In this document: piece by piece, positions 6,492 to 49,400 of the stretch
Layout: every line of letters begins with the position of its first letter
Numbering within the stretch: the first letter of the stretch is position 1
Assembly (NCBI GenBank): GCA_002104905.1
Contig: MCFE01000123.1
Coordinates: forward strand, 1-64,000
Length of the DNA: 64,000 nucleotides
Source: Basidiobolus meristosporus CBS 931.73
Taxonomy: Eukaryota; Fungi; Basidiobolomycota
Reading direction: 5' to 3'
The notes under the pieces: generated by a model
Databases searched by the model: none
Told to the model about the DNA's origin: nothing
The model's input: the letters and a program-made list of their open reading frames with translations, nothing else
Position numbers and translations under genes: made by a program

Positions 6492-9400
6492 ATGCCGGAT
6501 GATATACAGGGCGAAAACACTCAAAGAGGGTATTGGTACGAAACACTGAAAGATGCTCCTGTGCTGCTTGACCTACCCACTGATCGGCCTCGCCCGCCTC
6601 ATCCATCCTTTGCTGGGGCAACGTCGACGGTTCAGTTTGATACACAAACAACGCATTCACTCAAGTTGCTGAGTCAAGAGAACGACACGACCCAATTCAT
6701 AATATTATTGATTGCTTGGAGTGCGGTGCTCTCGCGTCTCTCTGGCCAAGAGGACCTTGTCATCGGAATCCCAAGAGCCCAGCAGGGTTGCTGGCTACCA
6801 TTGCGCATCGATCTCTCTAGTGATCCAAGCACAATTAAATTGGCCAAGCTAGTTCAGGCATGTGTGCAGGAAGCACAGATGAATTCAGCCGTCCCCAATG
6901 AGCAAATCTTAGAGATTGTAAGCCCGCCTGAGAAATTGAATCATGCTCCGTTGTTCCAGGTCACACTTGCAGCTAGTGCAGAGCACACTCCAGATATGGT
7001 GAGTTCCGCATTCGATCTGGAACTTAATCTGCATAATGTCGACAACGAAATCCACGGATACTTGAGGTTTGCCACCAGTTTGTTCGACTCCCCAACAATT
7101 GAGCGCTACATCGGTTACCTTAAGATGATGCTACAAGGGATGATGGCCGACCCTACGAGATCTGTTCACAAAGTCAACATAATAACTCCTGCTGAGCGGA
7201 CTCTCTTGACAGAGACATGGAATCAGACACACATGACATATGCGAAGCATACATGCATTCACCAGCTGTTCGAGCAGCAGGTGATGCGCACCCCGAATGC
7301 CACTGCTTTGGTGTACGAAGGGCAGGTATGGAGCTACGAGGAGGTGAACGAGCGTGCCAACCGACTCGCACATCAGCTCGTCAGTCTGGGCGTCAAGCCA
7401 GATATGCGCATAGCGATCTGTGTGGAGCGCTCGCCAGCCATGGTGGTGGGACTGCTCGCTATCCTGAAGGCGGGAGGTGCATTTGTTCCACTCGACCCGG
7501 CGTATCCCAGCAATCGACTCGTGTATATACTGAACGATGCCGCTCCGGTGGTATTGATAGCGGATGGAGTCGGACGCAGCGTACTGAGTAGTGAATCTCT
7601 CGCTTCTCTGACTATTCTCGATCCAAACATGGAAACAACATGGCCCTGCACTAATCCAACTATCGTAGGGCTGGCTTCACACCACCTTGCCTATGTGATT
7701 TACACTTCAGGCTCCACTGGCAATCCAAAAGGAGTGATGGTGGAACACCGAGGCGTCACAAATCTAATTCAGGCAGAGAGATCTTGCTTCGGGGCTGATT
7801 CGTCAAGTCGAGTGTTACAGTTTGCCTCGCTTAGTTTCGATACGAGTGTTTCAGAGATATTCATGGCATTGAGCTGCGGTGGAAGTCTGTATCTACCGCC
7901 TGATATCGCCCGCTTTGATCGCAACGCCCTGTGGAGTTATTTGGCACACCACGCGATTTCCCACGTAACCTTAACGCCAACGATGCTTCAAGATGGCCAG
8001 AATCTGCCCATCCTGAACACCCCACTAACATTGATCATGGGAGGCGAGGCATTAAGTGGAGCGTTGCTTCAAACCCTGATCCCCCAAGGGGTGGTGATCA
8101 ATGCCTACGGCCCAACTGAAGCATCGATCAGCGCCATTATATGGCGTTGTCCACCAGACTTCAAGGGAGAAGTGGTTCCCATTGGCAGGCCAATTGCAAA
8201 CACTCGCGTCTACTTGCTGGACAAATACGGCCAGCCAGTACCCTTGGGAGCAGTGGGCGAGATCTATATTGGAGGGGCAGGCGTCACTCGTGGCTACCTG
8301 AACCGTCCAGATATGACCGCTGAGCGCTTCCTCCCAGATCCATTCAGTAATGATGACGATGGCAGAATGTACAAAACTGGGGATCTAGCTCGCTATCTTC
8401 AAGATGGCACAATTGTATATCTAGGTCGCAACGATCAGCAGGTAAAGATGCATGGAATTCGGATTGAAGTTGGAGAGATTGAAGCACGCCTTGTCGAGCA
8501 TCCGCAAGTACGTGAAGCCGTTGTGCTTGTACTGGGCGAGGGCAGCAGCAAGCGCCTTGTCGCATATGTCATGGCTGATCCTGACGAGTATCTTGGCCGC
8601 ACACTGCGTGTGTATCTCAAATCCAAGATGCCGGAGTACATGATCCCAACCAACTTTGTGCGGCTAGATGCGCTACCATTGTCGCCTAACGACAAGCTTG
8701 ATCGCCGAGCATTACCGACCCCAGATGAAGACTCTTTTGCTCGTCAGGTATATGAAGCGCCGCGAGGTGAGATAGAGATGGCTTTAGCAGCAATCTGGAG
8801 TGAACTGCTTCATGTGGAGCACATCAGTCGCCATGACAATTTTTTTGCTCTTGGTGGCCACTCGCTAGCAGTTATAGCTTTGATCGAGCGCCTAAGGTGT
8901 ATCGGTCTAACAGTTAGCCTGCGCACCCTATTTAATAATCACACTCTGGGCTCACTTGCGAAGGGCCTCGGTCAACACCACCAATTACACATACCGCCCA
9001 ACTCTATTACTCCTGGCTCAACCACATTGACTCCAGCACAATTACCGCTCATTGATCTCAGCCAAGCCGACATCGACATCATTGCTCGGCAGGTTCCCAA
9101 CGGAGCACAGAACATCCAAGACATCTACGCACTATCTCCGTTGCAGGAAGGAATCCTGTTTCATCACATCCTGGCAATGGAGGGCGATCCCTATCTTCTG
9201 ATCTCTCAGATGGTATTTGATGACCGGGAGTTGCTTGATCGCTACTTGAATGCAGTCCAAAACGTAATCAACCGCCACGATATTTTCCGCACATCCATCT
9301 TCTGGGGAAATGTCTCTGAGCCTGCGCAGGTGGTCTGGCGTCATGCACCGCTAAATATCCATGAGCTTACCCTCAGTGCCGCCAATGGGCCCATTGCAGG

Positions 9401-12400
9401 ACAACTGATGGAGCGCTTCAATCCTCGTAAACATCGCATCGACTTGTCGAAGGCTCCATTGATACACATGGCCATCGCACAGGACAATGATGGCTGTTGG
9501 GTGCTCACACAGTTGATTCACCATCTCATCGGTGATCACGCAACACAAGAGAGGATGAATATGGAGATCAAGGCGTTCGTGGACAATGTGGCCATCGATG
9601 CCCTGCCTACTCCTCAGCCATTTCGCAACTTGGTAGCACAGGCACGCTTAGGAATCACGCAAGAAGAACATAAGAGATACTTCACCGATATGCTCAAGGA
9701 CATAAGTGAAGGTACGCTGCCGTTTGGGCTATCCGATGTTTATTGTGACGGGACGCAAATCACAGAATGTCATATAATGCTCCCACAAGAACTGGATGTT
9801 CGCCTGCGTTCCCAGGCGAAAATCTTGGGTGTGAGCTTATCTAGCATGTTCCACCTGGCCTGGGGTCGGGTTCTCTCTAGTATTAGTGGGCAAATTCATG
9901 TTGTGTTTGGTACCCTGCTCTCTGGGCGAGTGCAGGCTGGAGAAGGGTCAGAGCACATGATGGGGCTTCTGATCAATACATTACCCTTCCGCATTGACCT
10001 TGATAACGATAGCATTCGCGATAGTGTACGCCGGACTCATGAGGATCTGGCCGCGCTTATGGAGCACGAATATGCCTCATTGGCACTCGCACAGCGCTGT
10101 AGTAGCTTACCTGCAGGCGGGCCCCTTTTCAGCTCCAATCTCAATTATCGGCGCGACACGCTACCATCGGGTGATTACGCAGAAGCACCAATGGCTGAAT
10201 TCGTGGGGGAGAGTGAGCGCTTCAACCATCCTGGCATTAGGTTTGTAGGTGCCTGTGAGCGGACAAACTACCCACTCTCGCTGGCCGTAGAAGATTTTGA
10301 TGTAGCTATGGGCCTGACTGCACAGGTTGTTCAACCACTTGACCCAGCTCGGATCTGCAGTTATATGTTACAAGCGCTACAAGGCCTTGCTGTGGCACTG
10401 GATTCCACACCAAGTATGCCGGTTTGGCAAGTGGAGGTTGTACCAAAGGCGGAGCGTGTGCTTTTGCTTGAAGAATGGAACGATACGGGTGTTCCCTTCA
10501 AAGAGCATTTGTGCATTCACCAGCTCTTTGAACAACAAGTCAAGCGTAATCCGAATGCAACCGCGGTGGTGTACGGGGATGAAACATTAAGCTACAGTGT
10601 GTTAAATACGCGGGCCAATGGTCTCGCGCACCGGCTCATTGAGCTGGGCGTCAAGCCAGACACTCGCGTCGCCATCTGCGTTAAACGTTCACCCGCAATG
10701 TTGGTTGGGATATTATCTATCTTGAAAGCAGGTGGTGCCTATGTTCCACTTGATCCTGCCTATCCTTGTGAACGCCTTGCGCACATACTCAATGATGCTA
10801 CCCCAATAATTCTGCTAGCTGATGATGCTGGGCGCACTGCACTTGGTGACATCGATCTTACACCGCTAACGGTACTCGACCCAAATGCGCAGATGCCACC
10901 ATCCGCAGCTAACCCAGATATCTCAGACTTGGCCTCACATCATCTTGTCTATGTAATCTATACATCCGGTTCCACTGGAACTCCCAAAGGAGTGATGGTT
11001 GAGCATCGGAATGTGGTGAACCTCATCCAGCACCAGACAGCCTGTTATGGGATAGATTCAACAAGTAGGACACTGCAGTTTGCCTCGTTAAGCTTTGACC
11101 CCAGTGTCTCGGAAATATTCAAGACGTTGAGTTGCGGTGCTTGCCTGTATCTTCCTCCAGATGCAGTCCGTTTAGACCGGAAACTTTTATGGGGCTATTT
11201 GGAAGAAAATGCCATAACGCATGTGACTTTGGCCCCGCCTCTGCTGCAGGATGGCAAAGATTTACCCGCATTGAGTACGACTCTGACACTAATCATGGGA
11301 GGCGAAACACCCACCACGACATTGCTTCAATCCTTGATCCCGAACGTTGTTGTTTTCCTTGAGTACGGGCCAACTGAAGCCACTATCAATGCTACTACAT
11401 GGCGTTGTCCACCGGATTTCAACGGAGAGGTGGTTCCCATTGGCCGACCAGTTCCAAACGCTCGCGTCTATGTGTTGGATATTCACCGTCAGCCAGTACC
11501 CTTGGGCGCGGTAGGTGAGATCTATATTGGAGGGACTGGTGTCACTCGCGGCTACCTGAACCTTCCCGGAATGACGGCGGAGCGCTTCATTCCAGATCCA
11601 TTCCATGAGAAAGAGGGCGCTAGAATGTACAAGACGGGGGATCTGGCCCGTTACCTCCCGGACGGTGCACTGGTGTTCCTTGGACGCAATGATCATCAGG
11701 TCAAGATCCGAGGAATTCGGATTGAAGTAGGTGAGATCGAGGCACGCCTTATCGAACACCCTCGGGTGCGAGAGGCGGTTGTGATTACTGTTGGCGAGGG
11801 AAGCGACAAGCGGATTGTAGCCTATGTTGTGGCCGAGCCGGACGAACATCTTGCTCACAAGCTTCGTGTTTACCTCAAGTCCAAGCTCCCTGAATACATG
11901 GTACCAGCCCACTATGTGTGCCTGGATGCGCTGCCGATGTTGCCTAGTGGCAAACTTGATCGTCGGGCCCTGCCAGCAATAGCCGACGAAGCCGTTGCTC
12001 GTGAGGTTTACGAAGCGCCACAAGGTGGGACAGAGATTGCTTTGGCGGGTATTTGGAGCATGCTACTTCAAATTGAGCATATCGGTCGGAGGGACAATTT
12101 CTTTGCATTGGGTGGCCACTCGCTACTGGCAGTACGTTTGATGAACCGAATGGTGGATCTAGGGGCCTCATTGCCATTGACAACGATCTTTTCTTCACCT
12201 AATCTCGCTTCCCTGGCAGCTACAGTTGACCAGCACTTGAATCAAAAAGACACTGGGGCCCGTGCCATTACGCCAGTCTCCCGTATGGGGGCCCTGGAAC
12301 CGTCTTTCGCTCAAGAGAGTCTGTGGTTTGTATCGCAACTTAACGATCGGGCCAGCATGACCTACAATATACCACTCGCTATAAAATTCCGCGGCACCCT

Positions 12401-15400
12401 CGACGGGGCTGCCTGGCAGCAAGCATTGAACACCCTATTCGCACGCCACGAAGCACTACGCTCCGTATTCCACATTGTCGATGGTAAACCCAAGGTGGAA
12501 CTACTGGATCCAGAGGTAGGCGTACCAATCATATGGCATGACCTGCGTGGCGTGCCCAACGCTCAGGTGCAACTTGACAGTTTAACTGCGGTGGAAATGT
12601 ATGAGCAATTCGATCTAGCCCATGGGCCACTTTTACGGGCTCGCTTGGTCCAACTTTCGGACGATGAACAGGTGTTTCTGTTTACCATGTACCATATGGT
12701 CTCGGATGGCTGGTCTGCCGGACTACTCACTCAGGAGCTGAATACCTTGTACGCAGCCTATCGCGCAGGCCAGCCTAATCCACTGCCACCGCTTTTCATC
12801 CAATACCCGGATTATGCTGCCTGGCAAAAACAACAGCTCTCCGGTAAGAGATTGGATGCACAGAGCTCGTATTGGCGCGAGGCGCTTGCTGATACGCCCG
12901 CTCTGCTGGAATTACCTACTGATCGGCCTCGGCCTCCGCAACAGTCCTTTGCTGGGGCCGTGTTAGAGATACACCTTGATAAACAGATGACTCTGGCACT
13001 CAGACGCTTGAGCCAAGAGCACGGGGTGACTCTATTTGTGATGCTGTTGAGCGCATGGGGTGCTGTCTTGTCTCGTCTCTCTGGCCAAGACGACATTCTC
13101 ATCGGCTCGATTAATGCTAATCGTAACCATCATCAGGTTGAGGGATTGATAGGGCTTTTCGCCAACTTCCTTGTGTTACGCATTGACCTTTCTGGGGAGC
13201 CGAGTGCAAGTCAGTTGCTTAAACGTGTTCAGCACTGCACACTGGCTGCCCAAGACAATCAAGACCTTCCCTTTGAGGAGGTCGTTAGAATTGTAAATCC
13301 ACCTCGTAAACTGAGCCATACCCCATTGTTCCAGGTCACATTTACTTGGCAAAACAATGATATGGGGGCATGGGATCTGCCTGGTTTGGAAGTGGTACCT
13401 GACTTGCCTAGCTACAATGCAGCTTCATTCGATCTTGAGTTGGATCTGACAGAGGAGGAGGAGGAGATCGTGGGAGAATTGAGCTTCTCGACCGCTCTGT
13501 TTGACCATCAAACCATTGAGCGCCATATCAGCTACCTGAAGGCCATGCTACGAGCTATGATAGATGATCCGGAACGGCCTGTTGCAAAACTCGACATTCT
13601 TTCTGCAGATGAGCGCAAACTTTTATTGGAATCACAAAATGAGACACATATGACATGTGAAAAGCATACGTGCGTTCACCAGCTGTTCGAGCAGCAGGTG
13701 GTGCGCACCCCGAATGCCACTGCTTTGGTGTATGAAGGGCAGGTATGGAGCTACGAGGATGTGAACGAGCGTGCCAACCGACTCGCACACCAGCTCATCA
13801 GTCTGGGCGTCAAGCCAGATATGCGCATAGCGATCTGTGTGGAGCGCTCGCCAGCCATGGTGGTGGGACTGCTCGCTATCCTGAAGGCGGGCGGTGCATA
13901 TGTTCCACTCGACCCGGCGTATCCCAGCAATCGACTCGTGTATATACTGAACGATGCCGCCCCGGTAGCATTGATAGCGGACGGTGCTGGACGCAGCATA
14001 CTAAGCAGAGAGGTTCTCGGCTCTCTGCCAACACTTGACCCTAATACACAGATCACATTACCTTCTACCAATCCATCTATTCCTAATTTGGCGTCAAATC
14101 ATCTTGCATGTGTATTGTACACCACGGCCCCCGCTGGCAATCCAAAAGGAGTAATGATAGAGCATCGAAACCTACAGAATTTGGTTCAAGGTCAATTGAG
14201 TCACCTCGAGGTCAACCCCTCTAGCCGAGTGCTACAGCTTGCCTCACTTGGAGCGGATACAAGTGTCTTGGAGATATTCATGGCAATAGGCTACGGAGCA
14301 AGTCTGTACCTCCCTCCTAATATTGTGCATGTGGTTCGATGTACGTTGTGGAGTTATCTGGCAACCCATGATATTACACACGTAGCCTTAACTCCTTCCT
14401 TCCTTCAGGATGGAAAGGATTTACCTGTTCTGAGTTCGCCACTCACACTTATCACGAGAGGTGAAGCGCTCAATGCATCATCCCTTCGGACCGTGATCCC
14501 TCGCGGTGTTTTTATCAACCTCTACGGCCCAACCGAAGCATCTGTTGGCGCCATTGTATGGCGTTGTCCACCAGATTTCAAGGGAGAAGTGGCACCTATT
14601 GGCCGGCCGATTGCAAACACCAGGGTCTACTTGCTGGACAAATATGGTCAGCCAGTACCTCTAGGAGCAGTAGGTGAGATCTATATTGGTGGGGCTGGGG
14701 TCACTCGTGGTTATCTGAACCTTCCTGAGCTGACATCTGAGCGCTTCGTCTCGGACCAGTTTGATGCAGACGAAGACTCCGGGCTATTCAAAACCGGCGA
14801 CCTGGCCCGCTACCTTCCAGACGGCAACTTGGAGCTTGTGGGCCGCGACGTTCCTGCAGTCAAGATTCGAGGGATGCGAGTAGAAGTTGCAGAAGTGGAA
14901 GCATGTCTTGTCGAACATCCAAAGGTACGAGAAGCAGCTGTGACGGTACTAGGCGAGGGAAATGACCGTCGTCTAGTTGCCTACATAGTCGCCAAGTCTG
15001 GTAACCATCTTGATTGCGTACTTCACACCTATCTCAAGACCAAACTGCCCGAACATATGATTCCTGCCAGCATTATACTTCTGGAGGCACTACCACTATC
15101 TCCTAATGGGGTGCTTGATAATCAGGCGCTACCAGTGCCTGACGGAAGGACCTCTGCTCACCATATGTGCGAGGCGCCACAAGGCGAGATCGAGATGGCA
15201 CTTGCAGGTATCTGGAGTGATCTGCTACACATGCAACATATTAGCCGCCACGACAGCTTTTTCTCCCTTGGTGGCGACTCGCTTCTGGCCGTTATGATGA
15301 CCAGCCAAATTATGACCGCCCTGAACATCGAGGTTACGGTGCATACGGTATTTGAGTCTCCCACCATTGCCCGGTTGACACAGCGTATACTCGAGGTGAC

Positions 15401-16226
15401 GCGTACCCAAGACGATCCGGTGAATGTCTTGATACCCATCAAACCGACAGGCAGCCGCCCACCTCTTTTCTGCATTCACGCTTTAGTAGGCCATTCCTGG
15501 AGTGTGGCTGACCTGGCTGCGCATCTACACCAGGACCAACCCGTCTATTATGTTGAAGCCCGTTTACACAGCAATGTTACCTCAATCGACGCCGCATTTG
15601 ACACCATGGCACTGGGATGTGTGAACGAGATACGCCGTGTTCAAAAAAATGGGCCTTACTATCTTTTGGGATGGTCGCACGGCGCCAGCATAGCCCACCG
15701 TATTGCAGTCCAACTGGAACTGCAAGGAGAGAGTGTAGCATTGCTCGCATTGCTAGATGGCTACCCCGATTACTCACGCTCCAACAAAAAATCCAATCTT
15801 GATTATTCATACTTGTCAAAGCCACTCGTCCCCAAATACCCTGAACCAGACTACATAATAGAGAAGACTACAGAGGTAACCTGTTGTTCGTTTTTCAGCT
15901 GTTTCAGCTCCGAGAACATGGCCGTTACCGGGCAATATTTTTGGGGCAAATATCGGAACTTGCTCAACAAGATCTCTAGCATCTCAAAGAAGCCGCCCAC
16001 TCGCATTCATAAGGGCAGCCTGCTCTTCATTCAAGCCACCGAAGGGACAGATGGCTCCGCTCCTCTATTCTCCCCTGATTTATGGAAGCCCTACATAAGC
16101 GGCGACCTCGAGACTCACGGCATCCACTGTCAACAAGAAGACCTCATCAGACCAGAATTCGCTCTGGAAGTTGCCCAGGTTCTGAGATGCACGCTCGACA
16201 GACTGCATCAGGACGAGCAAGTTTGA
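6492..16226 (+). CDS. Trimodular non-ribosomal peptide synthetase: truncated C*-A1-T1-dual E/C-A2-T2-C-A3(degenerate)-T3-TE
   Basis: 3244-aa intronless ORF. A-domain cores YTSGSTGxPKG, YGPTE, YKTGDL; T-domain GGHS (8862, 12120) and GGDS (15279); dual E/C signature FHHILAMEGDPY (9162) plus HHLIGDH (9519); YHMVSDG in the last C (12690); TE nucleophile GWSHG (15669). Confidence 0.97.
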   Translation: MPDDIQGENTQRGYWYETLKDAPVLLDLPTDRPRPPHPSFAGATSTVQFDTQTTHSLKLLSQENDTTQFIILLIAWSAVLSRLSGQEDLVIGIPRAQQGCWLPLRIDLSSDPSTIKLAKLVQACVQEAQMNSAVPNEQILEIVSPPEKLNHAPLFQVTLAASAEHTPDMVSSAFDLELNLHNVDNEIHGYLRFATSLFDSPTIERYIGYLKMMLQGMMADPTRSVHKVNIITPAERTLLTETWNQTHMTYAKHTCIHQLFEQQVMRTPNATALVYEGQVWSYEEVNERANRLAHQLVSLGVKPDMRIAICVERSPAMVVGLLAILKAGGAFVPLDPAYPSNRLVYILNDAAPVVLIADGVGRSVLSSESLASLTILDPNMETTWPCTNPTIVGLASHHLAYVIYTSGSTGNPKGVMVEHRGVTNLIQAERSCFGADSSSRVLQFASLSFDTSVSEIFMALSCGGSLYLPPDIARFDRNALWSYLAHHAISHVTLTPTMLQDGQNLPILNTPLTLIMGGEALSGALLQTLIPQGVVINAYGPTEASISAIIWRCPPDFKGEVVPIGRPIANTRVYLLDKYGQPVPLGAVGEIYIGGAGVTRGYLNRPDMTAERFLPDPFSNDDDGRMYKTGDLARYLQDGTIVYLGRNDQQVKMHGIRIEVGEIEARLVEHPQVREAVVLVLGEGSSKRLVAYVMADPDEYLGRTLRVYLKSKMPEYMIPTNFVRLDALPLSPNDKLDRRALPTPDEDSFARQVYEAPRGEIEMALAAIWSELLHVEHISRHDNFFALGGHSLAVIALIERLRCIGLTVSLRTLFNNHTLGSLAKGLGQHHQLHIPPNSITPGSTTLTPAQLPLIDLSQADIDIIARQVPNGAQNIQDIYALSPLQEGILFHHILAMEGDPYLLISQMVFDDRELLDRYLNAVQNVINRHDIFRTSIFWGNVSEPAQVVWRHAPLNIHELTLSAANGPIAGQLMERFNPRKHRIDLSKAPLIHMAIAQDNDGCWVLTQLIHHLIGDHATQERMNMEIKAFVDNVAIDALPTPQPFRNLVAQARLGITQEEHKRYFTDMLKDISEGTLPFGLSDVYCDGTQITECHIMLPQELDVRLRSQAKILGVSLSSMFHLAWGRVLSSISGQIHVVFGTLLSGRVQAGEGSEHMMGLLINTLPFRIDLDNDSIRDSVRRTHEDLAALMEHEYASLALAQRCSSLPAGGPLFSSNLNYRRDTLPSGDYAEAPMAEFVGESERFNHPGIRFVGACERTNYPLSLAVEDFDVAMGLTAQVVQPLDPARICSYMLQALQGLAVALDSTPSMPVWQVEVVPKAERVLLLEEWNDTGVPFKEHLCIHQLFEQQVKRNPNATAVVYGDETLSYSVLNTRANGLAHRLIELGVKPDTRVAICVKRSPAMLVGILSILKAGGAYVPLDPAYPCERLAHILNDATPIILLADDAGRTALGDIDLTPLTVLDPNAQMPPSAANPDISDLASHHLVYVIYTSGSTGTPKGVMVEHRNVVNLIQHQTACYGIDSTSRTLQFASLSFDPSVSEIFKTLSCGACLYLPPDAVRLDRKLLWGYLEENAITHVTLAPPLLQDGKDLPALSTTLTLIMGGETPTTTLLQSLIPNVVVFLEYGPTEATINATTWRCPPDFNGEVVPIGRPVPNARVYVLDIHRQPVPLGAVGEIYIGGTGVTRGYLNLPGMTAERFIPDPFHEKEGARMYKTGDLARYLPDGALVFLGRNDHQVKIRGIRIEVGEIEARLIEHPRVREAVVITVGEGSDKRIVAYVVAEPDEHLAHKLRVYLKSKLPEYMVPAHYVCLDALPMLPSGKLDRRALPAIADEAVAREVYEAPQGGTEIALAGIWSMLLQIEHIGRRDNFFALGGHSLLAVRLMNRMVDLGASLPLTTIFSSPNLASLAATVDQHLNQKDTGARAITPVSRMGALEPSFAQESLWFVSQLNDRASMTYNIPLAIKFRGTLDGAAWQQALNTLFARHEALRSVFHIVDGKPKVELLDPEVGVPIIWHDLRGVPNAQVQLDSLTAVEMYEQFDLAHGPLLRARLVQLSDDEQVFLFTMYHMVSDGWSAGLLTQELNTLYAAYRAGQPNPLPPLFIQYPDYAAWQKQQLSGKRLDAQSSYWREALADTPALLELPTDRPRPPQQSFAGAVLEIHLDKQMTLALRRLSQEHGVTLFVMLLSAWGAVLSRLSGQDDILIGSINANRNHHQVEGLIGLFANFLVLRIDLSGEPSASQLLKRVQHCTLAAQDNQDLPFEEVVRIVNPPRKLSHTPLFQVTFTWQNNDMGAWDLPGLEVVPDLPSYNAASFDLELDLTEEEEEIVGELSFSTALFDHQTIERHISYLKAMLRAMIDDPERPVAKLDILSADERKLLLESQNETHMTCEKHTCVHQLFEQQVVRTPNATALVYEGQVWSYEDVNERANRLAHQLISLGVKPDMRIAICVERSPAMVVGLLAILKAGGAYVPLDPAYPSNRLVYILNDAAPVALIADGAGRSILSREVLGSLPTLDPNTQITLPSTNPSIPNLASNHLACVLYTTAPAGNPKGVMIEHRNLQNLVQGQLSHLEVNPSSRVLQLASLGADTSVLEIFMAIGYGASLYLPPNIVHVVRCTLWSYLATHDITHVALTPSFLQDGKDLPVLSSPLTLITRGEALNASSLRTVIPRGVFINLYGPTEASVGAIVWRCPPDFKGEVAPIGRPIANTRVYLLDKYGQPVPLGAVGEIYIGGAGVTRGYLNLPELTSERFVSDQFDADEDSGLFKTGDLARYLPDGNLELVGRDVPAVKIRGMRVEVAEVEACLVEHPKVREAAVTVLGEGNDRRLVAYIVAKSGNHLDCVLHTYLKTKLPEHMIPASIILLEALPLSPNGVLDNQALPVPDGRTSAHHMCEAPQGEIEMALAGIWSDLLHMQHISRHDSFFSLGGDSLLAVMMTSQIMTALNIEVTVHTVFESPTIARLTQRILEVTRTQDDPVNVLIPIKPTGSRPPLFCIHALVGHSWSVADLAAHLHQDQPVYYVEARLHSNVTSIDAAFDTMALGCVNEIRRVQKNGPYYLLGWSHGASIAHRIAVQLELQGESVALLALLDGYPDYSRSNKKSNLDYSYLSKPLVPKYPEPDYIIEKTTEVTCCSFFSCFSSENMAVTGQYFWGKYRNLLNKISSISKKPPTRIHKGSLLFIQATEGTDGSAPLFSPDLWKPYISGDLETHGIHCQQEDLIRPEFALEVAQVLRCTLDRLHQDEQV

Positions 16227-18837: not shown

Positions 18838-19033
18838 TCCCAAGAGACTCTTAATTTCTGCACGAATAAGGAAATAAATCAACATCCATTCCACACATCC
18901 CCAACCAAAATTTGCCTTCAGAACCGAGCCTTTATAACTGATAGAATGTATGGTAACAAGTGTAAAATAAATCATTGGGATGATGCTCCGAATTTATAAA
19001 TTATCTACATTTTATGTCGTGCAACTTTATGCA

Positions 19034-20810
19034 TTAATCCGTTTGTTTCTCTTTCGCGGGCTCCTGTGCAGCTTCTTCGCTGTTACTCTCGTTAGTGCTT
19101 TTTTCGGGCTGCTGATCGCCAGTGCCTTGCTTAGCGTCGTAAGTAAACACTTGAGCTTCACTGGGATCGTAGTAAAAGTCGTATTCTTCATCCTCGTCCT
19201 CATCCTCATCCTCGACCGCGGCCTCGGTGGGATGCTCGGTCTTTGCTTTCTTGGCGTCACTCTGTGCACTATCTGCCTGAGGTGCTACGCCTTCCGTACC
19301 TTGTCCCGCAGCGTAGCCATAGTACTGGCCGTTCGCGTCATAATAATACTGATATGCGGAATAGTCGTAGGGCTGCCCGCCTGCAGCTCCCTCTTCTGGT
19401 TGCTGCTGCTGTTGCTGTTGTTGCCAATAGTGCCAAGCCCAAGCGTTGTAGTCGTTTTCGTATTGCTGCTGGGCAGTAGCATCGTCTTGGTAAGTGTACC
19501 CAAACTTTGGATCCCCCACCATTTTCTCACCGTCCGCGTCGGCCTTGCGCTTGTTCTCATTGTGATACATGTAATAGTGCTCTGGGTCACCAACAACGGC
19601 GGCCAAGTTAGGGTGGTGCTGTTGCATGGCCTCCAACAGTTGTTCCTCCGCTCTCAGCTGTTTCTGCTCCTGGACGCGAGGGTTTGGATCCTCCGTGGCC
19701 CAGCGGACGTTGAGAAGCTTCAAGGCAAGAGTGAGTATGAGTCGAGACTCGTTTTGTCCAGTCAACGCCAACCTACCTCGTTATTATCCAGACTTTGATT
19801 CATCATTGCCTCACGAGCGAACTCAGCGTTCTGTCTACGCTTGTACATAACGAAGGCGACATACTTACTGTAAAGCACCTTGACTATGAAATGAGAAAAA
19901 AAGTTAGATCACGTCGTATGGCTGTTCAAGATGGCCGTTTCTTACTGGGTTCAACGATCTCGCCCCATTCCGAGAAGTGTTTGCGCACCGTTTCCTAGGT
20001 GAGCGCGTTAATTCGGAACGAGCAGCACCGACGTACACGTATCATTCCACCTACCACGATGTTTTTACAATTCGCGCTGATACCACCAACGTACAACGTG
20101 GTTGATTCCGAGTTGAATGAGCCGACACCACCCATATCGTCACGATGAGAGCTATCAGAGTGAAGCCAAGTTAGAACAACATCTCATATAATTCGTGTGA
20201 AACTGGTTGATGGATTTGAATGAACATACGCATGTCTCTCTCGTCCGAAGATATCCACTGAATTTCCTAGATCCTGATCCCCTTCCACAGGTAATCTATG
20301 GAGGAATTGGCATTCGTACCCTTTGACACAGAAGCCCTTGGCGAAGTGCCAGCAGAAAGCGGTTTGCTCTCCCATTTCAGCCCCTTTGGTGATACCGGAG
20401 TCTCTTTCAATGTTGCAACGAGTGGTTGCTCTCTCACGACTAACATACACAAAAAGCGGGGATATAAGTACGGTGTCCTGAACAAACGGTAGGAGAGTTT
20501 CTACAAGTATTTCAGGCGCTTGATTGACCCACGTCTCTGATGAACTTGCGAAAGCAATTGGAAGAGAGGTGAAGTGACTTACGGCTTACGCGACCAACGA
20601 TCACCGCCGGTGTACTTGTTGTACCAGATATTGTACTCGCCCTGTTGTTCTGAAGCATCCATGAATTTCTTCAGAACACCGGCTTGGTTGGGTTGGGCCT
20701 ACGACAGAGTTCATCATTTTAGCCAACACGTCACTGAGGGGTACGCAACGAAAAGATCGGTGGTTTACCTGGCGTCTAGCCTTCTTGACTGGTTTGTTAT
20801 TAGTTGCCAT
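19034..20810 (-). CDS. cwc2: Pre-mRNA splicing factor Cwc2 (CCCH zinc finger + RRM), 7 exons
   Basis: Manual splicing through six GT-AG introns (donors GTAAAC, GTAAGT, GTATGT, GTAGGT, GTAAGA, GTAGGT) gives MATNNKPVKKARRQ / ...EYNIWYNKYTGGDR / RCNIERDSGITKG...FCWHFAKGFCVKGYECQFLHRLP...DIFGRERH / HRDDMGGVGSF...TLYVGGI / HFSEWGEI / AEFAREAMMNQSLDNNE / LLNVRWATEDPNP. These are all hallmark Cwc2 motifs. Confidence 0.92.
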
Positions 20811-42859: not shown

Positions 42860-45120
42860 ATTTCACCCAAATATTCTAAGTAAATCCCAACAAGCAATTT
42901 GGTCAGTATTCTCTAGGATTTGAAGAAAATGATCCAAGTGACTAAGTAAGGTGAATATTTAGGTGGAATTACAAATTTTTACAACACTCCCACTCAGCTA
43001 ACTGTTCATACTGACTACTCCTAATTTTGACCTAAGATATTCAAGCTTGTCTCTAGCTAATGGTTTGCTAAATATGTCTGCAATCATTTCATCTGAAGGA
43101 CAGTAAACTAAGCTAAGTTATTTTCTATTGCTTCATGTATGAAATGATGTCTAATATCTATGTGCTTAGTTCTAGCATGAAAAGTTGGATTTCTACCTAA
43201 TTGTATATATTGTTGATTATGTTGAAATAAAGTAATAGGCATTTTTTGACATAGGCCAATATCTGTAAAAAGCTTTCTCAAACACATTGCTTCTTTTGTA
43301 GCTTCACAGGCTGCCATGTACTCTGTCTCTGTGGTAGAAAGTGCTACGGTCGGCTGCTTTCTTGAATTCCATGAAATTGCTCCTTTACAGTAAAGAAAGG
43401 TGCATCCTGTGGTGGATCTTCTGTCTTCCAAATTCTGTCCCCAATCAGCATTAGAGTATCTCACAAGGTCCTGTTCTGAGTCCTTATAAGTGTATCTTAA
43501 GCAGATATCAGCAGTTTCTTCTAGGTATCTAAAAATCCACTTAACTGCTGCAATATGATCAGATCCATAGTTCTGATTATGTTGGCTGACAGCTCCCGCT
43601 GAATACAAGATATCTGGACGTGTTCCAAGCTTGATATACATCAGATTGCCAACCATAGATTGATAAGGAAAGTCTGGGCTTTCAGATGGCACCAAGCTCT
43701 CTAGATTTGGTTGAGTTTTGACTAAGTTAAGGTTTGTCTCCATTGGGGTAGCTGCCGGTTTACTGTCTTCCATTTGGTACTTCTTTAGTATATCTTAAAT
43801 ATACTTGGATTGGCTTAGGGTAATAGTCTGGGTGCTTCAGTGTATGGAGAACTTGATCCCTAAGTAATAACTGAGTTCTCTTAGATCAGATATCTTGAAC
43901 TCCTTAGATAGGCTGGATTTAGTCTCTTCCAATGTTTCTAGGTTATTGATGGCTATAAGATCATCCACATATAGAGCTAATAGAACTGGATCTATTCTAT
44001 CTGGCTTATAGTATATACTATAGTCAATATTACTCCTTTTGAAACTCAAAGATTCCAAATAAGAATCTATCTTGCAATTCCAGGCTCTTGGTGATTGTTT
44101 GAAATCCAATAGAGACCTTTTAAGTTTGCAGACCAAATGGGGGTTATATTGGTCAGCAAACCCATTGGGCCGGTCTACATACATGTCCTCATCAAGTTTT
44201 TCATTCAAAAATGCAGTTTTTACATCCATTGGATGAATAAAAAACTTATATCTGGCTGCAATAGCCAATATTAATCTGATGGAGTTAAACTTGGCTACCA
44301 GTGCAAAGGTCTTGGTACAGTCAAGTCCTTTTATTGGAGAGTATCCTTTGGCCACAAGTCTTGCTTTGTATAATTCAATTGCACCATCAGTCTTGTATTT
44401 TATCTTAAAGACCCGTCTGCACCCAATTGATTTTTGGTTCATTGGTAATTTAACTAAGGCCCAAGTTTCATTTTCCATCAGGACCTGAAATTCCTCAATC
44501 ATTGCAGATCTACAAAACTTTGTCTGAGGACTATTTAGAACCTCTTTTACAGTCTGGGGTTCATGAATATGGACTGAATAGGCATAGGCTAAGTTTGTAC
44601 CCTCATTGATAGAGTAATTTGGACTATTTCTTGTCTAATTGGATCTTTAAACATTTGATACTAGGATGATCACTTCTGAGATATTCCTGGGTGCTGATTC
44701 AGGTTGAACCACAATTGTAGGATCCTCTGGAGTGAAATAATTATCATTGTTTTGCTCTGATTCAATTTCTGACAATTGATGGACTTGAGATCAATTTTTG
44801 TCATCATCTGATGTCATTTTCTGTGAATATTTTGAATTTTCATCAAACAACACATCCCTGGACTTGATTAGCTTCTTTGCTTTGGTATTGCAGAGTCTGT
44901 GTGCTTTGCTCTCATTGCAGTAACCCAAATATATGCATTTTACATTTTTTAGCTTGAATTTTGACTGATTTCTGTGCAGTTTCTTGGCATATGCTGTACA
45001 CCCAAACATTCTCAGATATTCTGCACTTGGTCTGTACCTATATTATGCTTCAAATGGAGTTGCAATACAGTAGTTGTGTGCTTTATTACTGTGAAATTTT
45101 GTACCTTGAATAGCCACCTA
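42860..45120 (-). mobile_element. Ty1/copia family 1 element, 3' half (partial 3' LTR, PPT, RNase H, RT, end of integrase)
   Basis: LTR end at 42986 next to the PPT; ORF fragments ARLVAKGYS, MDVKTAFLN, LYVDDL, GAISWNSRKQPTVALST, ARTKHIDIRHHF. Confidence 0.92.
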
Positions 45121-46400: not shown

Positions 46401-49400
46401 TGTTGCAAAAGTTTGTAATTCCACCTAGATATTCACCTAACCTAGTCACTTAGATCATTATATTCAAATCCTAGAAAATACTGACCAAATTTCTTTTTGG
46501 GACTTACCTAAATATTCTCACCAAAATGCCAGTTACCCAGAACATGAAAATTCTCAAAGTTATCCAAACAGCCAAAACTTTGCACATAGGCTCTTTGGAC
46601 CTTCTTCAACCTATTCTATGTGATTGTTATGCCAAGACTATCTAAAAGTATAAATGCTGCTTCTACCTTCAATAAAACATTAAGTGAAAACCACATAATC
46701 TACTTGTCCTCCCTATCACTTCTAATATCTCCAAGACCCTAACAATAGGTTATGAGCCCCAAGCTGTCACTCTCTGCAATGTCTGCTACTGCCATTACTG
46801 GAACTTTTCCCTCTGCTGAAAAGCTGGAAGGATCTAACTACCAAGTGTAGAAGGAGGAGATGAAGATGCTGCTACAAGAAAGAGGCCTTGGGATACTGTT
46901 GCAGGAGAAGACTACCCTCCTAACAGCGTGGGAGAGGATGCCTTAAAGTTCTAGAAGAAAGAACAAAGTTCCTTTAACTGCATATGCCTTGATGTTAAAG
47001 ACAATTTGCCAATTCAATGCTGAAGAGCTAAAACAGCAAAGAATGCCTGGAAGGCATTAGAAAACACCTATCAGTCATGTTCAGCTGCTAGGAAAGTGTA
47101 TCTGAGACAAATCTCTGTACTACAAGGATGCTGCCACAAGAAGATATGAAAAATCTAGTTAACAGAATTACCCTTCAAGTGGATGAAATGGAATCTGTGG
47201 GCATACCATCTACTAATAAGAATATGATAGTTACCATCCTGAATAGCCTGACAGACAAGTTTAAGCACCTTGAATCAGCCCTAGAGTCAAGAACTGGAGA
47301 TCTGAGCTTAAATTACATATATCAAAGGCTTTTGGATAAAGAATTAAGAAAATCAAGCGCCAATAAGAAGGAAGAAGAAAATGCTTTAATAAGCAACAAT
47401 AACCAACAAAGGCAGTACGCAAGACCCTACAAAGGCAACTGCAACCTGTTTTGTAACTACTGCAAAAGGAAAGGACACACATTGGACCAGTACTTCAAAA
47501 AGAAAGATAGTCAGCAGAAAAAGCCTGAAAACGGAAATACTGCAACAATTGAAGATAGACTATTCATATCTGCACTATGCATGTCCACAAACAAGGATTC
47601 CCAGATGTGGTATATTGACTCTGGAGCATCTCAATACCTTACACATCAAAAAGAACTTTTTACTCAATATCAAGAAATTCCAATCAAGAAGGTTTTCATG
47701 GGTGATAATAGATTTCTTGATGCAGTGGGAGAAGGAACTATCCAAGTAAACCTTAGAAGCAGCAAAGAAAGCCATATATTGACTTCTAAAGAAGTACTCT
47801 ATGTACCAGAAATAGCCAAGAACCTACTATCTATAAGCAAGGCCACAGTAGAAGAACTCAGTTTCAGCTTTGACAATTCTGGATGCAGGATCACTGATCA
47901 AAATGGTGCCCATCTTACTTTGGGTATCAGATATCAGAATCTGTACAGGTTGATCTATATTCCATCATATCAGGAAGCCAATATAAATAGCTTAAATGAA
48001 GAAACACAAATGCTTTGGCACAGGAGATTGGGACATATTGATTTTGATTATTTGCGCAAGATGATCAACAATCAGCTAATTTCTGGAGTAAATATTGATC
48101 CCCTAGCTAATATGGAGCACTGTGAATCCTGCATATATGGGAAGCAAGCCAGACAATTGTTTCAGAGCTCTGGGTTAATCAATACTAAGAAAAAATTAGA
48201 TATAATTCACTCAGATCTGTGTGGAACTATGCAAAATTTATCCTTAAGTGGGGTGAAGAATATAATCACTTTTATTGATGATTATACAAGATACACATGG
48301 GTCTACTTCAGGGAGAGAAAGGATGAAGCTCTGTCTAAGCTGAGGGAGTTTAAAGCCATGGTGGAGAGAGAAGCTGGTGAAAAAAATCAAAAGAATATGC
48401 TCTGAAAATGGTGGAGAAAATACCTCAAAACTCTTCATCCACATCTGCAAAATTCATAAGATAAAGTAAGAGACTACTATACCATACTCCCCACAGCAAG
48501 ATGGAGTAGCAAAGCATGCCAACAGATGAATAATTGATATGGCAAGATCTATGATCCATGATCAGTAATTATCCTTTGATTTTGGGCAGAATCAGTTGCC
48601 ACAGCTTTATACCTTAAGAATAAGAGTTATAAGAGAATACTTTGTGGCTCTACTCCATTTGAAGCATGGTGTGGATACAGGCCAAGTGCAGAGCATACAG
48701 AATATTTGAGTGTATAGCATATGCCCAGAAAGTGACCAGAAATCAGTCAAATTTGAGCCAAAAAGTTTAAAATGATTATTTATGGGCTACTGCAATTAGA
48801 GTAAAGCATCAGACTCTGCAATACCAAAGCAAAGAAGCTTATCAAGTCTATGGATGTGTGGTTTGATGAAAATTCAAAATCTTCACAAAAAATGACATCA
48901 GATAATAACAAATATCTGATCTCAAGTCCATCAATTGTCAGGTTTGAATCATAGCAAAAGAATGAAAATTATTTCACTCCAGAGGACTCTCCAACTGTGA
49001 TTTGGGCTAAAGAAGTGCCCAGGAATATCCCAAAAGTGATCACTCCAGTATCAAATTCCCAGAGTTTCTAGTGCACAAGAAATAGGCCAAATTACTATAT
49101 CAATGAGGGTACAAACTTAGCCTGTGCCTATGAAGTCCATATTGATGAGCCACAGACTGTAAAAGAGGCCCTATATAGCCCTTAGACAAAGTTTTGAAGA
49201 TCTGCAATGACTGAGCAATATCAGGCCCAGATGGAAAATCAAACTTGGGCCTTAGCCAAATTACCTATCAACCAAAAATCAATTGGGTGCAGATGGGTCT
49301 TTAAGACAAAATACAAGGCTGATGGTACAATTGAAAGATACAAAGCAACGCTTTGGACAAAGGATACTCTCCAACAAAAGGACTTGACCATACTGAGACC

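Follow-up and report, generated by a model that had tools for sequence, protein, structure and literature searches.

The subject of this report is a nonribosomal peptide synthetase (NRPS) gene in a 64,000-nucleotide (nt) stretch of DNA from the fungus Basidiobolus meristosporus CBS 931.73 (positions 1 to 64,000 of contig MCFE01000123.1, assembly GCA_002104905.1; below, the window). The gene is an intronless open reading frame (ORF) of 9.7 kb at 6492-16226 on the plus strand, the strand to which all domain coordinates below refer, and its 3244-amino-acid product is identical to the single-exon gene model on record for that contig. An initial annotation, made from the letters alone, had described the frame as free of stops, and we likewise found zero stops within it. 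The encoded domains are, in order, a truncated condensation (C) domain, an adenylation (A) domain, A1, a carrier (T) domain, T1, then C2 (of the dual epimerization/condensation, or E/C, type), A2, T2, C3, A3, T3, and a thioesterase (TE), with both A3 and the TE degenerate; Pfam reports three AMP-binding, three AMP-binding_C, three PP-binding, three Condensation, and one Thioesterase match. Judged by its sequence, the gene is a bacterial-type three-module NRPS in a fungal genome, and it is the last of the three modules, in which the frame stays open and catalytic residues have been replaced, that concerns us here.

Lesions in the terminal adenylation and thioesterase domains

A3 (13668-15149) is a full-length A domain of 494 amino acids that is degenerate in its core motifs. 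As a reference set, we aligned 565 A domains extracted from 120 homologous proteins, 562 of them foreign and three belonging to the synthetase itself. At the 151 columns that are at least 90% conserved in the foreign domains, A3 departs from the conserved residue 29 times, whereas A1 and A2 do so 14 times each; the median across the set is 3, the 95th percentile is 13, and the only domain that exceeds A3 is one cut at the end of its protein. The P-loop of the A3 motif (14118-14150, residues 2543-2553) reads YTTAPAGNPKG, so that the SGST of the consensus YTSGSTGxPKG has become TAPA. The A4 motif reads ADTS (within GADTS, from residue 2587), in which the substrate-amino-binding Asp is present and the invariant Phe has become Ala. 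The A8 hinge (14841-14864, from residue 2784) reads GRDVPAVK against the consensus GRNDxQVK, with Val for Asp and Ala for Gln, and Val2874 (codon 15111-15113), in NGVLD, stands in the place of the A10 catalytic Lys (PxxxNGKxDR). None of the 562 homologues has the A3 residue at the P-loop S, G, S, or T, the A4 Phe, the A7 Tyr, the A8 Asp or Gln, or the A10 Lys, and A3 is alone among all 565 domains in lacking the A10 Lys, the A8 Asp, or the P-loop Gly, a set of differences well outside what chance would give. Motifs A5 to A7 are retained (NLYGPTE, GEIYIGGAGVTRGY for the A6 motif GELxIGG, and FKTGDL), the Tyr-to-Phe replacement in A7 being their sole change, and the sequence TRGE begins at residue 2655.

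When solved A domains (LgrA, PheA, and others) were aligned with A3, its substitutions were found to fall in the canonical motifs. The initial annotation had listed the altered P-loop, ADTS, TRGE, GRDVPAVK, and the Val of NGVLD, and every one of these readings, with its position, was confirmed. From what is established for ANL enzymes, an A domain without the A10 Lys and the P-loop should not adenylate. A3 should thus be inactive in adenylation, and this core of the earlier inference is supported by the alignments to both the 562 homologues and the solved domains. From motif offsets and GrsA numbering, we take the approximate pocket codes to be D-T-S-T-I-G-A-I-S-K for A1, D-P-S-T-I-G-E-I-N-K for A2, and D-T-L-A-I-R-L-V-G-V for A3; on the same approximate numbering, TRGE would presumably put an Arg at A3 pocket position 301.

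The TE (15414-16223) has a type I thioesterase fold in which Ser3062 and Asp3089 are present and the His of the triad is replaced by Gln3215. The nucleophile motif GWSHG occupies residues 3060-3064, its Ser3062 occupying a column that does not vary in a 34-sequence alignment, and the column of Asp3089 is Asp in 93 of 93 homologous TEs. Gln3215, encoded by a CAA codon (16134-16136), lies in the sequence H-C-Q-Q at the place of the invariant catalytic His of the G/C-x-H motif: all 93 homologous TEs have His in this column and G or C two residues earlier, and in an ungapped alignment Gln3215 faces the C-x-H His of EntF (DCAHVDIISP) and of 7crn (RCSHPHMMQP). The observation in the initial annotation that GWSHG is intact and that C-Q-Q replaces C-x-H therefore stands, with His in 93/93 TEs at the position of Gln3215. 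Its further suggestion, that the His of GIHC might substitute, probably does not. His3212 could be the motif His only by a two-residue shift in an otherwise ungapped alignment, and as a substitute base it was rejected on the grounds that 11 homologues have a His there in addition to the catalytic one.

An AlphaFold2 model of the TE, built from the 34-sequence alignment, has a mean predicted local distance difference test (pLDDT) score of 82.8 with the core above 90, and its best matches in the PDB are 7crn and the EntF TE, with E-values of 1e-18 to 1e-14. Because the core is modeled with confidence and these two structures are its best matches, the TE is predicted to have kept its fold, while the general base is gone. 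A lid insertion (residues 3100-3129, 15789-15878) that the closest relatives do not have is modeled with pLDDT below 50. A Cys/Ser/Phe-rich segment (residues 3132-3141) lies just downstream of this insertion. With the EntF-type and Skyxy-type TEs (PDB 3tej, 5ja1, 7crn), the domain shares the GxSxG Ser, the Asp after strand 6, and the C-x-H context; it differs from them in having Gln for the His of C-x-H and in the extra low-confidence lid insertion.

The initial annotation had allowed that the substitutions might prove to be assembly errors. Logan contigs from two short-read runs of the same sample (word depth, ~250) match 13931-16226 with zero differences, and a 2411-nt Logan contig from a different sample, covering 13778-16188, carries the same lesions; moreover, the lesions amount to dozens of substitutions, not a few indels, so that sequencing or assembly error in the PacBio assembly is an extremely improbable explanation that can be set aside. 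The second sample differs from the window by seven transitions. These single-nucleotide polymorphisms (SNPs) all lie within 14684-15045, none of them in a P-loop, A10, or TE codon, and the sole nonsynonymous one, D2786N (G>A at 14847), falls in the broken A8 motif, changing GRDV to GRNV, toward the consensus Asn. We considered whether the seven SNPs represent a conversion tract from A1 or A2, which would invalidate the polymorphism test given below, and rejected this, since three of the seven match A1, three match A2, and the intervening differences between the paralogues are unconverted.

Remaining domains and genomic setting

The other two domains of module 3 also carry changes. C3 (12294-13646) belongs to an LCL-like group and has the motif YHMVSDG. 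The initial annotation had the C3 catalytic His as kept, which is correct for His2068, the second and catalytic His of the motif, but the invariant His that precedes it in HHxxxDG is Tyr (H2067Y, 12690-12692), a residue found there in 0 of 181 homologues. T3 (15174-15401) retains Ser2930 within GGDS, as had been reported, and the residue before it is also changed (H2929D, 15276-15278), the motif being GGHS in ~570 homologous carrier domains and Asp occurring at this position in none of the homologues.

Modules 1 and 2 retain every catalytic motif in their A domains. The core motifs of A1 (7251-8738) are intact (YTSGSTGNPKG, FDTS, GRNDQQVK, and NDKLDR), as are those of A2 (10509-11996), and the carriers T1 (8757-8975) and T2 (12015-12233) both read GGHS. 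C2 (9099-10421) has an N-terminal HHILAMEGD in addition to its HHLIGDH. An extra N-terminal motif of this kind is typical of dual E/C domains, and the sequence of C2 is consistent with that type. The protein opens with the C-domain remnant (6492-7196), which is a C-terminal half only and bears internal deletions, its residues 9-245 aligning to residues 2122-2384 of C3; tblastn of the sequence upstream revealed no remnant of the N-terminal half and no upstream exon. Since the gene starts with half a C domain, and the missing half is not encoded upstream, it has the appearance of a synthetase that was formerly larger and of which the 3' part remains.

The top protein matches are five-module NRPSs of ~5400 amino acids from Mycoavidus and Mycetohabitans, which are fungal endosymbionts, and from Mortierellaceae, Photorhabdus, and Xenorhabdus. 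Apart from the NRPS protein itself, a word-based protein search returned nothing above 58% identity and no orthologue with the same module, and a search of a plasmid DNA collection with the stretch gave zero matches. Such NRPS genes in CBS 931.73 were catalogued by Tabima et al. (2020; PMC7466969) as horizontal acquisitions; exactly one in their list, model 368581, which they describe as highly expressed, is a "surfactin-like," beta-proteobacteria-like NRPS with three A domains, and the ORF at 6492-16226 is probably this Joint Genome Institute model. Of the sequencing runs listed, none is recorded as RNA; one may be a transcriptome, going by its size profile.

The gene lies within a block of ~50% GC that has AT-rich stretches on either side, with few long ORFs and a copia gag-pol fragment in them. 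It is flanked by genes for a permease of the xanthine/uracil type, a double AAA ATPase, and a YchF GTPase. These neighbors are housekeeping genes, the setting as a whole is eukaryotic, and no tailoring, transport, or phosphopantetheinyl transferase (PPTase) gene stands alongside it. By tblastn, there is no second NRPS-like segment and no stand-alone A-T gene within the 64-kb window, the rest of the genome not having been searched. Elsewhere in the window, a plus-strand ORF of 272 amino acids at 18980-19798 has no Pfam match; it overlaps a recorded gene model on the minus strand, whose product has a Torus domain, and is probably spurious. The AT-rich flank at 28000-64000 (35 to 45% GC, few long ORFs) contains, at 47128-48405, an ORF of the copia gag/pre-integrase type. 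Two minus-strand ORFs of 221 amino acids each lie side by side in the same flank (43108-43773 and 43837-44502), the first of which has no Pfam match.

Ancestry, rate, and constraint of module 3

In a tree of the A domains, the three of this synthetase group as (A2,(A1,A3)) with supports of 0.99 and 0.97, making A3 the sister paralogue of A1, and their own sister clade comprises 36 domains in all, those of Mortierellaceae plus a B. meristosporus paralogue (support, 0.85). A1 and A3 share a recent gene-conversion tract of ~340 nt (13650-13990 at A3 and ~7235-7575 at A1), over which they are 95 to 100% identical in nucleotide sequence, the proportion of synonymous differences (pS) being only ~0.06 to 0.08; short-read contigs collapse or branch at this tract. 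On its downstream side, the tract stops ~130 nt (some 40 codons) short of the degenerate P-loop. Beyond it, synonymous sites are mostly saturated (pS, ~0.6 to 0.75), and over a stretch spanning A5 to A6 (14535-14715 in A3, 8118-8298 in A1, and the matching part of A2) pS is ~0.45 for all three pairs, which would reflect either older homogenization or constraint at the nucleotide level.

With no orthologue above 58% identity, we used paralogue and relative-rate tests in place of per-domain ratios of nonsynonymous to synonymous substitution. In a Tajima relative-rate test outside the conversion tract, with A2 as the outgroup, A3 had 69 unique changes compared to 21 for A1 (p = 4e-7), and its terminal branch was 0.459 compared to 0.151. 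The TE, tested against its Mycoavidus relatives with five outgroups, had 45 to 64 unique changes compared to 8 to 19 (p <= 2e-4), and its terminal branch of 1.19 contrasts with a mean sister depth of 0.34. The corresponding values were 0.43 and 0.53 for C2 and 0.47 and 0.37 for C3, and both A1 and A2 lay below the median root-to-tip distance. A3 and the TE have thus each evolved ~3-fold faster than their comparators, whereas C2, A1, and A2 have not, and this acceleration fits a loss of catalytic constraint. From the rates, together with the unique substitutions in C3 and T3, we concluded that constraint has been lost chiefly in A3 and the TE and that the remainder of module 3 shows traces of the same loss.

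The decay has not been unrestrained. The alignment of A3 with A1 is free of indels over residues 2362-2930. Random substitution in the region of module 3 would yield 0.048 nonsense changes per missense change, so that the ~93 excess missense changes (48 in A3 and 45 in the TE) should have been accompanied by ~4.4 stops under neutrality; none is seen (P ~0.01, an estimate). Of the seven polymorphisms in A3, six leave the protein unchanged, compared to 34% synonymous expected for random transitions (P = 0.008, from a small sample), and the core of the TE is still modeled at pLDDT above 90. The open frame, the lack of indels, the 6:1 excess of synonymous SNPs, and the confident TE core argue against a free neutral decay of module 3. 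Small as the sample is, these indicators point the same way, toward a selection that keeps frame and fold and no longer the catalytic residues.

What the terminal module may still do

We tentatively favor, at somewhat less than even confidence, a reading in which module 3 has no chemistry of its own and is kept as an open, folded, noncatalytic C-terminal appendage, while modules 1 and 2 make a D,L-dipeptide. The terminal module would then carry out neither its own adenylation nor canonical TE catalysis, and the enzyme would be at most a two-module line. A1 would charge T1, and the dual E/C domain would epimerize residue 1 and couple it to residue 2 on T2. Spontaneous release as a diketopiperazine is established for D,L-dipeptidyl thioesters in NRPS chemistry, and the D-aa1-L-aa2 thioester on T2 might leave without classical TE catalysis, either by hydrolysis or by self-cyclization to a diketopiperazine. 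Module 3 would persist under relaxed selection, its frame staying open since truncation would harm the expression or folding of the useful part of the protein; selection would act on an intact long transcript and protein, not on the chemistry of module 3. Several of the observations given above weigh against so passive a role. The indel-free alignment of A3 with A1, the stops expected and not seen, the excess of synonymous polymorphisms, and the well-modeled TE core suggest that selection on module 3 still goes beyond keeping the frame open. The initial annotation had offered three outcomes, namely, a dipeptide with unusual release, trans-loading of T3, or the retirement of the module. The loss of the core residues on which these rested is confirmed, and the options are narrowed without being decided.

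The main rival, possible if on the unlikely side, is that module 3 is in use, with A1 or a trans-acting enzyme charging T3, C3 building a tripeptide, a Ser/Asp TE releasing the chain by means of another base or simply holding it, and A3 serving as a scaffold. In favor of this, T3 has its Ser, C3 its catalytic His, and the TE its Ser and Asp. The absence of indels and stops, the 6:1 ratio of synonymous to nonsynonymous polymorphism, and the confidently folded (modeled) TE core point in the same direction, as does the fact that A1 and A3 are sisters still exchanging sequence by gene conversion. There is also precedent in the inter-module loading of SidD (PMC10192304) and in the trans-complemented A domains of the albicidin and ramoplanin lines (PMC8949500). 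Against it, the TE has lost its general base here alone among 94 TEs and is ~3-fold accelerated, which is unexpected for a working release domain, and His3212, being off the motif position and present beside the catalytic His in 11 homologues, offers no ready replacement. Sites that are otherwise invariant have changed in C3 and T3, in ways seen in no homologue, no stand-alone A-T gene was found in the 64-kb window, and the A1 and A3 pockets differ at ~6 of 10 positions, an approximate comparison made by motif offsets.

We think it unlikely that the whole gene is an expressed relic, that is, a 5'-truncated piece of a larger, horizontally acquired synthetase that makes no product and in which module 3 is merely the most decayed part. 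The half C domain with internal deletions at the start of the protein, the lack of any remainder upstream, and the five-module, ~5400-amino-acid architecture of the nearest homologues are what such a history would leave. So is the absence of an orthologue above 58% identity from the protein database, and almost no words of the gene occur in sequencing runs of a different isolate that bears the same species name. A1 and A2 mismatch 14 of the 151 conserved columns each, which is beyond the 95th percentile and includes R654H in A1, and tailoring, transport, and PPTase genes are absent alongside. However, every catalytic motif is present in A1 and A2, neither of these domains nor C2 is rate accelerated, and fungal homologues also reach 15 mismatches. 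A stop-free frame of 9.7 kb would be very unlikely under neutrality, and the probable gene model, 368581, is reported to be highly expressed (PMC7466969).

Quite unlikely, in our estimation, is that A3 and the TE, instead of decaying, have been kept as pseudo-enzyme domains of a functional assembly line, in which A1 would charge both T1 and T3 and a TE-fold domain with Ser, Asp, and Gln would release or hand over the chain without the classical His.

That A domains can be dead and yet in frame is established for fungal siderophore synthetases and for several bacterial lines. The SidD module whose A domain is degenerate (dA) has its T domain loaded by A1 (PMC10192304; Bushley et al. 2008, PMC2644324). 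Like the SidD/NPS6 and SidC/NPS2 lineage, the synthetase described here appears to combine an in-frame A domain that is unable to adenylate with other, intact A domains in a fungal NRPS. However, the dA of SidD is missing ~290 N-terminal residues, whereas A3 retains its full length and has had its motifs altered by point substitutions, and SidD belongs to the SID/SIDE clades, whereas the Basidiobolus NRPS belongs to a bacterial-like clade with relatives in Mortierellaceae and of Burkholderiaceae type. A further difference is the damaged TE at its end, and inter-module loading is here hypothetical. The albicidin, cystobactamid, ramoplanin, and enduracidin lines (PMC8949500) resemble it in that they contain a full-length, in-line A domain with poorly conserved core motifs, but these lines have a stand-alone A-T partner in the cluster and an intact TE, while the 64-kb window holds no stand-alone A-T gene.

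The bacterial-type NRPSs of Basidiobolus and Mortierella are likewise already known, having been described in 2020-2021. The malpinin, malpibaldin, and malpicyclin synthetases of Mortierella alpina and the "surfactin-like" clade of Basidiobolus share with the present gene an intronless C-A-T organization with dual E/C-type domains and a terminal TE (PMC7466969; bioRxiv 10.1101/2020.08.21.262279), and these bacterial-like NRPSs of early-diverging fungi have, as it does, their nearest relatives in Burkholderiaceae endosymbionts and in Photorhabdus/Xenorhabdus. They consist of five to seven complete modules with intact motifs, whereas the gene studied here has three modules, is 5' truncated, and lacks catalytic residues in its last A domain and its TE. 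What appears particular to it is that a full-length A domain has been killed by point substitutions while an intact paralogue, A1, still exchanges sequence with it, and that the TE has lost nothing of its triad but the His.

The secondary metabolism predicted for Basidiobolus is unusually rich, and it stems mainly from NRPS genes of bacterial type that were acquired by horizontal transfer. Genome mining counts A domains and predicts products by collinearity, and for this gene it would predict a TE-released tripeptide. Because the sequence says that a canonical TE-released tripeptide cannot be made, the gene is a warning for product prediction in Basidiobolus. It also provides a tractable natural case in which to ask why the frame stays open through a dead A domain and a TE without its His, be it for a scaffolding role, inter-module loading, or protection of the transcript. 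Should it prove true that A1 loads T3, programming of the SidD type would extend to a different NRPS lineage, with an independent origin in a bacterial-type NRPS of a zygomycete.

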